Assembly: GCF_006345805.1 (NCBI RefSeq)
Contig: NC_043004.1
Span: 63,550,001-63,614,000, forward strand
Reading direction: 5' to 3'
DNA from: Octopus sinensis
Taxonomy: Eukaryota
DNA length: 64,000 bases
In this document: positions 24,596-62,873 of the stretch, piece by piece
Position numbering within the stretch: position 1 is the first letter of the stretch
Layout of the letters: the number at the start of each line of letters is the position of its first letter
Made by a program: the position numbers and the translations under genes
Notes under the pieces: generated by a model
The model's input: only the letters and a program-made list of their open reading frames with translations
What the model was told of the DNA's origin: nothing
Databases searched by the model: none

Positions 24596-24705
24596 GAAAG
24601 CGCGAAAAATTTGTATTATTGGAACCGTGGTAATGGGCGGAATAATTTTATTGAGCGGAATAGTGGTGTTGGGCGTAAAATTACGTAATGCTAATCAAAG
24701 ACAAG
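24596..24705 (+). CDS. M13 gene exon: signal-anchor/TM ([36 protein letters not shown])
   Basis: ttttatttgcAG acceptor, G|GTAAAG donor, 110 nt, phase 2 to 1. Basic residues followed by about 23 hydrophobic residues indicate a type II anchor. Confidence 0.8.
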
Positions 24706-60700: not shown

Positions 60701-62873
60701 TGTTTAATATTGTAAGGAGATATCAAAACATGTAACATAATTTAAATAACAAGATATGAGTTAGGCGTCACTTTCCCTTTCACTTTAATAAGTAATAAAT
60801 GGAATAAATAATATACTATAGCCGCGATTTGTACTATTAAAGTTGTTCCTGAATTTATAAAAAACCAAACTTAAGACGTAAAGTGTACTAGCCATCCGAA
60901 TGTGGCTAGCCACTGGGGGTGGGTGTTACTGACGCTTTTAGCCCCAGGAGATCGACGTCTCCAGCTGGCCTTAGACACAATTTCAGTGCCCTTGTGTTAT
61001 TTGCAAAGAGAGGTCATCCTCTCTCGAAAATCTAAGTGATACATACGGACTATAGTTTGACGTTACAGTTAAAAAGCACCGTTTTGCTATACAATTCGGT
61101 AGTGTATTAATGCGCCTTTGTCACTCTCGATATATTGTACTGATAGTATTCTTTTCTAAATTCTTTTCTAAATTCTTTTACTAAATTTAAGTAATCAGTA
61201 ATTAAATTTAAAAAAAAAAAATAAAAATATATCAATCACGGTTGATAATTTGGTTTGTTATTGAATGTTATGCCATGAATTTACCTCACCATCTAACTTT
61301 GGTTTTTAATACATACATATATACATACACACACATGACTACGTACATAATAGAAACTTATGCGCTGGATAGTGTCTGTGCGTGTTTATCTGCTCGTGTG
61401 CGTGCATGTGTACGTGCGTGCGTGTGTGTATGTGTGTGTGTGTGTGTGTGTGTTTGTGTGTATGTGTGTGTGTGTGTGTGTGTGTGTGTGTGTATGTAAG
61501 CAAACGTTGTCTGAATTCATTTCATTCAATCACTGAAATATTATTTTTCAGGACCTCAAAAACCGAATCCACATAGGTCGTCAAAATACAGAAAAGACCA
61601 AGGATAATCTGATTAAAAGCTATGCAGATGTATATATACTTTTTAAACTTTTATTTCTTAGAATTAGCGTCCCCATTAGCATATCTGTATTAGAATTTAA
61701 CTTGAGAAATATCATCTCAGTATTTTTAAAGTTATCCTTTCAATGACAACTAAAGAGAATAAACATTGTATTGATTCTCTTTTTGCAAGATGAATGATCT
61801 CATTCCTTTTCTACCTGCCAGTTTGTTCAATGGAAAAATATGGTGTAAACTGGAGATCGAAAGAACGGAATATGCAACTACATTTATCTATCTCATTCCA
61901 TGGACCTCTGCCACAAGCTAATAAACAAAATTCTCTGCTATATGCGGTTAGCCAAATAGACTTTCTGAAGCACAGTATTTCTATGAATATCAGTCATTTA
62001 AAAGATTCTTTTTTCCATTTTTGACCTCCTAAATTATGAAACTTGCAATAATAGTTTAATATTGTCCCACATATTTACTCTGTTACTTTAGGATTATTTC
62101 TTTGCATTTCCCAGAATAAATGACCACTTGGTACAATCCATAGAGCCTCGGTTATAATCCCTGACAGTATTTTATCCGACTCTTTGTGCTTTAAGTGTAA
62201 ATCCCACTGGTATCAACTTCGCCTTTTATTCTTTTCAGTATCGATAAACACGTACCAGTCTAGAGCAGTAGATTATTGTAGCTGTAGGTACATTGTGCTG
62301 GATACTTGGCGTTATTTGTTCCAGCCCATCGTATCCTGAGTTCAAACCCCTCCCTGATCTAAACTACATGTATCTACCGTGTTTAACATCAGAAGCTGGC
62401 ATCTTGGATGAGATTTGTTGTCGGAATTTCTGTCTGAATAACTTTCGTTATTTTTCACTGGAAGCCTTGCAAAGTTCAACAATACTTATTTTCTCCTGAG
62501 ACAATGGTTTAAATAATGTTGAACAAATATACGAAAAATATAGTGAAATTATGAAATGCAATGATGATTAATCATTTAAAGTAACTTTCTTATTTTTATG
62601 AATTATAATACATTAAAACATTTTATTTCATTTTAAAATTACGTTTGTACCAAATTATGTTTGTTAGCTATGGGGTCTAGTTTCAGTCTGGTAGTAACTT
62701 CCAAAATGAAACAATAATTCTTGAAAATGAATATTCGGAGTTTATTAAATACTTTAAATGTAATATATGATATTTTGTATCTTTTAGGTTTCTCTCACCC
62801 ACAAGTTTCTATCGAACATAGTTACAATGAGTAAAGTGAGTAATCAGCTTGGGAGAAGACTAAAGAACAACAA
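24596..62873 (+). CDS. Multi-exon gene (partial): divergent M13-family metallopeptidase (neprilysin/ECE-like), 13 exons in window, 3' part outside window
   Basis: Exons with AG/GT boundaries (one GC donor) join in frame without stops: TM segment, then [34 protein letters not shown]...KKLYKSC, LGGIP, FFNYYV, KSCLDV...LGWMY...[15 protein letters not shown]. These match the order of M13 N-terminal-domain motifs (DPCxDFyxyaCGxW, LYxSC, LGGWP, WMDxxT). Confidence 0.88.
25450..25772 (-). mobile_element. tRNA-derived SINE (family A), one near-full and one partial copy
   Basis: Reverse complement matches GGCGGCGAGCTGGCAGAATCGTTAGCA...GGTCGACTTTGCCTTTCA at 63607. Confidence 0.8.
28725..29108. repeat. 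Fold-back palindrome, about 179-bp arms, 27-nt spacer
   Basis: 28725-28903 versus 28931-29108 reverse complement, few mismatches; ends in (TA)n. Confidence 0.95.
29285..29326 (+). CDS. M13 gene micro-exon ([14 protein letters not shown])
   Basis: ctttaatccttgcAG acceptor, CAG|GTAAGA donor, 42 nt, phase 1-1. Joined to the next exon it gives LKAAHNVL, matching M13 CvkaAarIl. Confidence 0.7.
29985..30160 (+). mobile_element. SINE family A, 5'-truncated
   Basis: GGCATTTCGTCCGTC...GAGTTCAAATTCCGC...CTTTGCCTTCCATCCTTTCGGGGTC. Confidence 0.75.
30170..32190 (-). mobile_element. Decayed R4/Dong-type LINE interrupted by other sequence at about 31310-31880
   Basis: Reverse complement parallels 54080-55740: [41 protein letters not shown]...IQKIALLG, and the same 3' UTR. 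Confidence 0.85.
31528..31850 (+). mobile_element. tRNA-derived SINE (family C) with A/B boxes and CORE-like domain
   Basis: GGCGCGTGGCTTAGTGG (A box), GAGTTCGATTCCC (B box), then TCCTTGAGCAAGACACTT; followed by (TA)n. Confidence 0.8.
33512..33682 (+). CDS. M13 gene exon ([57 protein letters not shown])
   Basis: tttaccAG acceptor, G|GTACGT donor, 171 nt, phase 1-1. Contains the M13 hallmark DPCxxFxxYxCG. Confidence 0.9.
35266..35349 (+). CDS. M13 gene exon ([28 protein letters not shown])
   Basis: ccaacAG acceptor, AAG|GTTTGT donor, 84 nt, phase 1-1. LLEEP...LYKSC motif. Confidence 0.9.
35840..36620 (+). mobile_element. R4/Dong-type RT C-terminal fragment
   Basis: [39 protein letters not shown]. 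Confidence 0.75.
36660..37820 (-). mobile_element. Tx1 ORF2 3' portion, same family as 717-4103
   Basis: [63 protein letters not shown]...FFKFH. Confidence 0.9.
37985..38290 (+). mobile_element. Dong-type REL endonuclease 3' fragment
   Basis: [13 protein letters not shown]...[12 protein letters not shown], paralogous to 55290-55570. Confidence 0.75.
38489..38685 (+). CDS. M13 gene exon ([66 protein letters not shown])
   Basis: atttcAG acceptor, C|GTAAGT donor, 197 nt, phase 1 to 0. LGGIP resembles LGGWP. Confidence 0.85.
38837..39050 (+). mobile_element. SINE family A
   Basis: GGCGGCGAGCTGGCAGAAGCATTAGCA...GGTTCAAATT...GGTCGACTTTGCCTTTCATCC. Confidence 0.85.
39178..39300 (+). CDS. M13 gene exon ([41 protein letters not shown])
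   Basis: ttttttcAG acceptor, G|GTAAGT donor, 123 nt, phase 0-0, open frame. Confidence 0.8.
40480..41640 (-). mobile_element. Decayed RTE-clade LINE (end of EN and linker before RT)
   Basis: [32 protein letters not shown]-like, [17 protein letters not shown]. Confidence 0.7.
41645..42620 (+). mobile_element. RTE (BovB-like) LINE 5' end: UTR plus APE endonuclease
   Basis: IGCWNIRSM...[24 protein letters not shown]...[23 protein letters not shown]. Confidence 0.85.
43319..43408 (+). CDS. M13 gene exon ([30 protein letters not shown])
   Basis: cctattcAG acceptor, T|GTAAGT donor, 90 nt, phase 0-0. Confidence 0.75.
43681..43890 (+). mobile_element. SINE family A
   Basis: GGCGGTGAGCTGGCAGAATCATTAGCACGCCGGGCGAAATG... 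Confidence 0.85.
44827..45028. repeat. Fold-back palindrome, 88-bp arms, 26-nt spacer; related to the repeat at about 27886-28040
   Basis: 44827-44914 versus 44941-45028 reverse complement. The extension to 45120 is the reverse complement of 27886-27990. Abuts (TA)n. Confidence 0.9.
45141..46142. mobile_element. Non-autonomous element bounded by 170-180 bp direct repeats (Penelope pLTR-like)
   Basis: 45141-45312 matches 45965-46142, with a purine-rich interior and no long ORF. The PLE assignment is inference. Confidence 0.5.
47204..47334 (+). CDS. M13 gene exon ([43 protein letters not shown]), GC donor
   Basis: cccttcatAG acceptor; ends AC|GCAAGT; 131 nt, phase 0 to 2. Resembles the NEP segment FSWLNFTNEIM...PEYLTKLKPILTK. 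Confidence 0.8.
49438..49534 (+). CDS. M13 gene exon ([33 protein letters not shown])
   Basis: ttccatttcAG acceptor, T|GTAAGG donor, 97 nt, phase 2 to 0. Equivalent to the NEP DLQN exon. Confidence 0.8.
49730..50985 (+). mobile_element. 5'-truncated R4/Dong-type LINE (subfamily A) between (AAT)n arrays
   Basis: [10 protein letters not shown]...GERGL, KPLHGKY, AESEGF..A.Q.Q...[40 protein letters not shown]. Confidence 0.9.
51161..51715. mobile_element. About 550-bp non-coding interspersed element (X), copy 1, within (AAT)n
   Basis: Colinear with 56135-56690 over its full length, flanked by (AAT)n on both sides, no long ORF. Confidence 0.75.
51799..55740 (+). mobile_element. Near full-length R4/Dong-clade LINE (RT plus restriction-like endonuclease), frameshifted
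   Basis: N-terminal [11 protein letters not shown] ([34 protein letters not shown]), CCHC knuckle [29 protein letters not shown] and KYKDL motifs; 3' UTR runs into (AAT)n. Confidence 0.95.
55741..56134. repeat. Long compound (AAT)n/(AAC)n/(GAT)n array
   Basis: Directly visible. Similar arrays lie at 49617-49720, 50985-51160, 51716-51798 and 56691-56850. Confidence 0.95.
56135..56690. mobile_element. Element X, copy 2
   Basis: Same orientation as copy 1, roughly 85% identical by eye; followed by (ACT)n then (AAT)n. Confidence 0.75.
56990..57850 (+). mobile_element. Decayed mariner transposase relic
   Basis: [16 protein letters not shown] (degenerate TGDEKW), [16 protein letters not shown]. 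Many stops. Confidence 0.75.
58412..58534 (+). CDS. M13 gene exon ([41 protein letters not shown])
   Basis: ttataatcAG acceptor, GAG|GTAAAT donor, 123 nt, phase 0-0. Resembles WRRC...avGrLYV..aF. Confidence 0.88.
59407..59511 (+). CDS. M13 gene exon ([35 protein letters not shown])
   Basis: tctaaccAG acceptor, GAG|GTAAGA donor, 105 nt, phase 0-0. Resembles [33 protein letters not shown]. Confidence 0.9.
60318..60442. repeat. Perfect (GATA)n microsatellite; another at about 46200-46297
   Basis: Directly visible. Confidence 0.95.
61552..61629 (+). CDS. M13 gene exon ([26 protein letters not shown])
   Basis: ttatttttcAG acceptor, T|GTATAT donor, 78 nt, phase 0-0. IG at the expected IGYP position. 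Confidence 0.75.
62788..62873 (+). CDS. M13 gene exon ([28 protein letters not shown])
   Basis: tatcttttAG acceptor, AA|GTAAGA donor, 86 nt, phase 0 to 2. FLSNI resembles YFENI. Confidence 0.75.

Follow-up and report, generated by a model that had tools for sequence, protein, structure and literature searches.

The thirteen exons recognised at 24596-62873 of a 64,000-nt window of Octopus sinensis (CM016866.1 63,550,001-63,614,000) are exons 4-16 of an annotated O. sinensis gene for an M13 (neprilysin/ECE) type II membrane peptidase. We refer to this window copy, the gene of RefSeq XP_029640079.1, as A1. We lean towards regarding A1 as a young duplicate that has decayed at its 3' end, which would make it an incipient unprocessed pseudogene or, at best, the source of a truncated, non-catalytic product, because its HExxH exon is broken and a 97%-identical copy, A2, is intact. 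Three lesions in the HExxH exon, faster divergence of that exon, the intact A2 and weak constraint relative to Octopus vulgaris lead us to read A1 as most likely unable to make an active M13 peptidase, as far as can be judged from sequence.

The HExxH exon expected for A1 lies 13 kb past the window, at 88528-88594 of locus L001, which corresponds to window-equivalent 76822-76888 and to CM016866.1 ~63,626,822-63,626,888. L001 is CM016866.1 63,538,295-63,630,988 of GCA_006345805.1 and contains the window exactly at its positions 11707-75706. The counterparts of this exon in two more distant, B-type paralogs are found at L002 93180-93246 (B1) and L005 43289-43356 (B3). The acceptor of the A1 exon is lost, CAT|G preceding the exon where B1 and B3 have CAG, and so is the donor, which reads TTACGT where B1 and B3 have GTGAGT. 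The exon itself is 67 nt long when 68 are needed, the sequence GGAACA-TAATTGG being one T short of the intact B3 exon GGAACGTTAATTGG. With this deletion the reading frame gives MPINLVGLGT and then TAA, and IIGHEILHALDVH falls in another frame. In the single assembly considered, the zinc-binding HExxH exon of A1 cannot be spliced in frame. Of the 22 residues of this exon, 3 differ from those of A2, while the exons other than the one encoding the transmembrane (TM) helix have only 7 differences in 486 residues. A sequence-only reading of this window had named stops or frameshifts in downstream exons as the mark of a pseudogene, and these are present. That reading had also proposed either a new specificity or no activity; for A1 the lesions in the HExxH exon favour the second and not the first.

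The RefSeq A1 model is a truncation by read-through into the intron after exon 18, its stop being ATG TGA read within that intron, and XP_029640079.1 has no PF01431 (Peptidase_M13) match. The VNA(F/Y)Y substrate-binding motif (neprilysin Asn542) is present as DVNAVYNA in exon 17. The remainder of L001, which runs ~4 kb past the HExxH exon and 10 kb past the annotated gene end, yielded no other catalytic exon, and within the same 10 kb there were no exons for GENIAD (neprilysin Glu646, the third zinc ligand) or for the C-terminal His711/Arg717.

Several ways of repairing the HExxH exon were considered and rejected. An internal AG acceptor would restore the frame in A1 and B1, but in A1 the donor is also missing; use of the internal AG would also drop eight residues of the conserved strand before HExxH, and to find an AG in register ahead of a lesion of this kind is not improbable by chance (rough estimate ~0.45). 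Ribosomal frameshifting was set aside, no slippery heptamer being present, as was A-to-I editing, which cannot correct the frame.

The intact copy, A2, is annotated as "membrane metallo-endopeptidase-like 1" isoforms X1/X2 (XP_036361320.1/XP_036361321.1, 777/763 aa) and has a gene range of 115.8 kb on the same chromosome. The refined window peptide matches XP_036361321.1 at E = 0, and A2 is 97% identical over the 484 codons encoded in the window, with the same order of exon-matching protein segments and the same divergent motifs (CGEY, GGIP, WVD, IGRQ). Unlike A1, A2 has a complete catalytic domain. Its Peptidase_M13 score is 157.6 bits, its HEILH, EENIAD, VNAVY and C-terminal H..R align to ECE-1 and neprilysin, and it aligns end to end with the catalytic domains of these two enzymes (E = 2e-52 and 2e-49), although it lacks the pair equivalent to neprilysin Cys620-Cys746. 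In these alignments A2 keeps every catalytic residue, and it probably carries the enzymatic function. The two copies also differ in their 5' coding exons (MAERKYSEV... in A1 and MPGTEPLNSSK... in A2) and in the TM exon, where 8 of 36 residues differ and there is an indel; outside the TM exon, protein identity is 98.6%. A NAT sequon of A1 (Thr327 codon, exon 47204-47334) is NAR in A2 (T327R), so that the copies are one predicted glycan site apart.

As a decayed duplicate, A1 would have arisen recently from an M13 gene in a young, messy cluster, and its 3' catalytic exons would then have decayed. The HExxH exon would have lost both splice sites and shifted frame into a stop, leaving no active peptidase. 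Among the features of a duplicated pseudogene, a close intact paralog (A2), retained introns and disabling lesions in the HExxH exon were found. A processed pseudogene is ruled out, as all A1 introns are retained.

The syntenic locus of O. vulgaris (OX597821.1 8,992,911-9,078,671) is collinear with L001 at 94-97% identity up to a (TA)n run after the exon encoding DPC; the breakpoint aligns to window ~34236, and the alignment then jumps. This locus keeps the TM exon, the 42-nt exon, the DPC exon and the A-type last exon (100% identical to A2), and the middle exons are lost. What is left is a single A-type remnant with its TM exon in the A2 form, and the annotated product, A0AA36F5G7, is a 174-aa chimera that includes an out-of-frame reading of the 42-nt exon. 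Three exons were compared with O. vulgaris; those other than the TM exon had 4 substitutions in 213 nt, 3 of them non-synonymous and 1 synonymous. Divergence in the flanking introns is similar (2.1-3.6%). The TM exon (24596-24705) is a substitution hot spot in the same comparison, its 110 nt holding 10 substitutions and one 3-nt indel as against 2.1% in 3.8 kb of flanking intron; micro gene conversion and diversifying selection are candidate causes.

Several observations weigh against A1 being a decayed duplicate. All 18 exons upstream of the HExxH exon are open (554 codons) and have good splice sites, and the 98.6% protein identity to A2 outside the TM exon could reflect selection on the product, or else gene conversion or a duplication that is very recent. 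A B-type gene model whose range encloses A1 has catalytic exons further downstream, making other splice partners possible. The splice-site losses of A1 are deduced by comparing its exons with those of the B copies and with the A2 protein. Finally, A1 and the 35%-identical B1 have the same 1-nt deletion in their HExxH exons (GTTAATT to GTAATT), and B3, which is intact, equals B1 over the HExxH exon and ~45 nt on each side, bar the deleted base and a few small indels where repeats flank it. This one lesion could therefore stem from a systematic indel of the assembly; either such an artefact recurs, or the deletion is genuine and common to both genes. Recent gene conversion between A1 and B1 as the source of the common deletion was rejected, since the two exons differ at many other positions.

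These points bear first on whether A1 is instead an intact, active, fast-evolving M13 peptidase whose lesions are assembly errors, or whose true catalytic exons lie further downstream, with the RefSeq model truncated. We consider this unlikely. The 554 open codons and the good splice sites of the 18 exons fit such an enzyme, as do the intact exon 18 donor (AT|GTGAGT), which leaves the RefSeq stop as the result of intron reading only, and the recurrence of the deletion in B1 when a near-identical copy is intact, which resembles an assembly artefact. The O. sinensis assembly is, we presume, long-read based, and single-base indels persist in such assemblies. However, three independent lesions are packed into 70 nt, two of them being G-to-T changes at splice sites, which are atypical of long-read errors. 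The HExxH exon is also at its expected distance (5.8 kb after exon 18, compared with 5.6 kb in B1) and is more diverged than the other exons, and no other A-type catalytic exon follows in the 10 kb past the annotated gene end.

The high identity of A1 and A2 (97-98.6% in protein) might also arise if the assembly had falsely duplicated one locus or kept its two haplotypes apart, A1 then being an allele of the MMEL1-like gene that is null or mis-assembled. Many M13 models in the region are fragmentary, the B-type copy on an unplaced 108-kb scaffold is collinear with B1 and one base off around the HExxH exon, and the O. vulgaris locus has a single A-type remnant with a TM exon of A2 form, all of which would be in keeping with this explanation. 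We nevertheless hold it to be quite unlikely, given that the 5' coding exons of A1 and A2 differ, that 8 of 36 residues and an indel set their TM exons apart, and that the two genes occupy separate ranges of 72.7 kb and 115.8 kb on the same chromosome.

In neprilysin and ECE-1 structures, the catalytic domain is built from an N-terminal segment together with the C-terminal third. A truncated 555-aa A1 product ending at GAPM would be without the core of this domain and is unlikely to fold like the full-length inactive members known in Drosophila, which makes it improbable that such a product functions as a non-catalytic, glycosylated type II membrane protein, for example as a binding or decoy protein. 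The exons common with O. vulgaris show no synonymous excess (3 non-synonymous to 1 synonymous), and the O. vulgaris locus is without the middle exons. In favour of such a product are the open frame, which is better kept than the dead catalytic exon, the RefSeq model of A1 as a protein-coding gene, and the expressed inactive M13 paralogs known in Drosophila (PMC2259306; PMC8223033).

It is highly improbable that the A1 N-terminal exons are a live variable cassette nested in a 214-kb B-type M13 gene and spliced onto downstream B-type catalytic exons, a splice that is conceivable because exon 18 and the matching B-type exon share their end phase. If it were so, several N-terminal regions with a fast-changing TM helix would use one catalytic module, like the UGT1A or clustered-protocadherin loci.

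The gene structure upstream of the lesions is well defined. Exons were rebuilt from stop-free stretches, AG/GT sites and phases, eight obvious exons being assembled first and five more added by a scan for splice sites and phase. The thirteen exons thus obtained on the forward strand measure, in order, 110, 42, 171, 84, 197, 123, 90, 131, 115, 123, 105, 78 and 86 nt. They have compatible phases and encode all the motifs that the sequence-only reading had listed for its chain of thirteen exons of 42-197 nt. Acceptors are AG in 13 of 13 and donors GT in 12 of 13, the remaining one being GC. The open frame described earlier was confirmed, and its length corrected from about 479 to 484 stop-free codons (1455 nt). 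The spliced product is 100% identical to XP_029640079.1 ("neprilysin-11-like", 555 aa), which equals the window peptide at every residue and is the third member of the first representative cluster found in the protein search described below. The gene, which had been described as hidden, was therefore already represented by its exact protein; A1 is annotated in RefSeq and UniProt under an automatic neprilysin-like M13 name that gives the correct family. An 18-exon splice from L001, consisting of a start exon 1.7 kb upstream of the window, 15 exons inside the window and 2 coding exons beyond it, gives XP_029640079.1 exactly up to its last residue. These 18 exons, 554 open codons without lesions, span a gene range of 72.7 kb. 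Exons 2-18 are as follows, in window coordinates.

Exon 2, 9828-9869, forward strand: 42-nt mini-exon YSEVAVGPCSSTV of the cytoplasmic tail, phase 2-to-2; located by tblastn of XP_029640079.1, AG/GT sites and the RefSeq splice.
Exon 3, 11551-11592, forward strand: 42-nt mini-exon YSEVAGGLGPSKV, a tandem duplicate of exon 2; located by tblastn, AG/GT sites and the RefSeq splice.
Exon 4 (exon 1 of the sequence-only reading), 24596-24705, forward strand: KARK followed by the signal-anchor TM helix, at the hydropathy peak.
Exon 5, 29285-29326, forward strand: 42 nt, from the splice-site and phase scan and the RefSeq splice.
Exon 6, 33512-33682, forward strand: the DPC exon, with cysteines equivalent to neprilysin Cys79 and Cys87 in the ECE-1/neprilysin alignment.
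Exon 7, 35266-35349, forward strand: LYKSC, the equivalent of neprilysin Cys142.
Exon 8, 38489-38685, forward strand: 197 nt, with LGGIP and the NLS, NVS and NHS sequons.
Exon 9, 39178-39300, forward strand: 123 nt, FHSTFRSY...NKLST.
Exon 10, 43319-43408, forward strand: 90 nt, LTGRRYF...
Exon 11, 47204-47334, forward strand: 131 nt, with the NVT, NET and NAT sequons, ending at the GC donor AAC|GCAAGT.
Exon 12, 49438-49552, forward strand: 115 nt.
Exon 13, 58412-58534, forward strand: RRKSC, the equivalent of neprilysin Cys410.
Exon 14, 59407-59511, forward strand: NWVD at the position of the WMD motif.
Exon 15, 61552-61629, forward strand: HIGRQ at the position of the IGYP motif.
Exon 16 (exon 13 of the sequence-only reading), 62788-62873, forward strand: 86 nt with a phase-2 end, the gene running on past the window.
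Exon 17, window-equivalent 69499-69557, outside the window, forward strand: encodes DVNAVYNA.
Exon 18, window-equivalent 70933-70984, outside the window, forward strand: intact donor AT|GTGAGT.

Exons 2 and 3 had been missed before, as had the GC nature of one donor. The intron at 47335-49437 is of the GC-AG type (AAC|GCAAGT...TTTCAG|A), and its donor, set in a strong context, is the sole non-GT among the 17 splice donors of the gene. A GT donor for exon 11 at 47338 was considered and rejected, as the GC donor at 47335 is the only one to fit the phase of exon 12 and to give the RefSeq protein; only the boundary at 47334 yields its residues THPT|DFMN. Mini-exons 2 and 3 are phase-symmetric and lie in ~1.7-kb repeat units (window 6963-12549) with an identical 35-nt acceptor context. 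The O. vulgaris locus apparently has more copies of this unit (~4 matches compared with 3), and repeats are also present inside the N-terminal tails of the paralogs A2 and B1.

The family assignment was supported by the profile search that had been proposed for the assembled peptide. Peptidase_M13_N (PF05649) matched with 106.8 bits (Pfam cut-off 32; E = 2e-30) over profile positions 1-378 of 381, and the rough 8-exon peptide had already matched at E = 2e-22. The description of an M13 type II membrane-protein gene spread across large, repeat-filled introns is upheld by this result. A chance origin of the exons is excluded because of the 100% identity to the RefSeq protein and the Peptidase_M13_N match, which rule out chance open reading frames. 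The closest solved structures to the window product are ECE-1 (3DWB) and neprilysin. The product has five cysteines, and its DPC, YSC, YKSC and RKSC align with ECE-1/neprilysin cysteines, corresponding to neprilysin Cys79, Cys87, Cys142 and Cys410. It also has seven N-x-S/T sequons (NTS, NLS, NVS, NHS, NVT, NET and NAT). The TM anchor was read directly from sequence hydropathy; the helix after KARK contains the top hydrophobic 19-mer, with a mean Kyte-Doolittle hydropathy of 2.6 compared with 1.6 for the next segment. Together the open exons of A1 encode a short cytoplasmic tail of duplicated 42-nt mini-exons, a signal-anchor helix and the whole Peptidase_M13_N region.

Human ECE-1 (3DWB) and neprilysin (1DMT, 4XBH and others) have the same type II topology, DPC...C, ...SC and ...KSC cysteines and N-terminal motif order as A1. 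Compared with these enzymes, A1 has very low N-terminal identity, replacements at Trp, Gly and Pro positions, no Cys-x4-Cys loop after the TM helix and a catalytic exon that appears dead. The motif substitutions named earlier were all seen in alignments with ECE-1 and neprilysin (CGGW to CGEY, GGW to GGIP, WMD to WVD, and IGYP to IGRQ). The claim of high divergence held as well, since A1 reaches a Peptidase_M13_N score of 107 bits, whereas an oyster ECE-1 scores 362 bits and a partial fly MMEL1 134 bits. Among non-octopus proteins the best match, oyster ECE-1, has 22% identity across 90% of the query.

A HMMER scan of 1.84 billion representative proteins returned two clusters with E < 1e-30 (92% and 40% identity), both with O. 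sinensis RefSeq representatives, and the further matches were mostly 22-35% identical over the matched part of the query, those next in rank being at 25-35%. Over all searches, O. sinensis and O. vulgaris were the only species to give relatives with E < 1e-30. In word-indexed searches with the N- and C-terminal halves, relatives above 50% identity were found in O. sinensis and O. vulgaris only, in agreement with the lineage-specific paralog proposed from the letters of the window. The same searches gave no proteins from O. bimaculoides or other cephalopods, which missing annotation could explain. On the basis of these searches, the M13 lineage of A1 is probably restricted to O. sinensis and O. 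vulgaris.

In Drosophila and nematodes, divergent M13 expansions specific to one lineage have been described, some of their members being inactive (Bland et al. 2008, PMC2259306; PMC8223033). Like A1, these are taxon-restricted, fast-diverging paralogs, some of them without catalytic capacity. The inactive Drosophila members are full length with substituted catalytic residues, whereas A1 has a disabled catalytic exon and a truncated annotated product. As a gene find, A1 adds little, its exact protein being public and divergent, partly inactive M13 expansions being documented (PMC2259306). What emerges is that O. sinensis and O. vulgaris have a small M13 clade of very divergent members, located on one chromosome in a fragment-rich region where annotations and copy counts are to be treated with caution. 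It is A2 (XP_036361320.1), not A1, that is the candidate for a new peptide specificity, for example towards octopus neuropeptides or salivary secretions.

Very divergent M13 paralogs are clustered at 63.15-63.63 Mb of CM016866.1. The B-type paralogs belong to the same subfamily and cluster as the A copies, from which they split much earlier; N-terminal identity is 35%, and identity over the catalytic region is 54% (A2 as reference). The B-type cytoplasmic tail is also repeat-built, as in A1, and the exon 18 donor AT|GTGAGT is common to A1 and B1. In O. sinensis the B-type models are mostly fragments. B1 is represented by two models on the opposite strand at 63.15-63.27 Mb (XP_029639718.1 and XP_029640295.1; 35% identical), and B3 (XP_036355068.1) is the copy on the unplaced 108-kb scaffold. 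B2 comprises XP_029639640.1 and XP_036361325.1; the model XP_029639640.1 has 372 aa, starts at an internal Met and has a gene range of 213.8 kb (~63.45-63.68 Mb). The whole 72.7-kb A1 gene lies inside this range, and B2 has no exon in the 92.7 kb of L001. The cause may be nesting, a mis-joined model or a scaffolding error. In O. vulgaris the B-type is represented by a full-length protein of 729 aa (CAI9726473.1).

The window as a whole is AT-rich (~29-51% GC in 2-kb windows) and abounds in microsatellites such as (TA)n and (AAT)n. Rfam at the gathering threshold gave no match in the window, and a 337-aa open reading frame at 725-1738 had no Pfam match. Copies of non-LTR (non-long-terminal-repeat) retrotransposons with RVT_1 and zf-RVT domains lie in introns on the forward strand at 725-3643, 49722-50627 and 52200-55649, and the copy at 52.2-55.6 kb is split by frameshifts. 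Inside intron 3 (11593-24595), a 250-bp unit occurs twice in tandem with 98% identity (18769-19272). Long intronic microsatellites include (TA) of ~310 copies at 22956-23574, (AAT) of ~123 at 55742-56109, (AT) of ~141 at 58719-58997 and (AT) of ~147 at 62935-63228.

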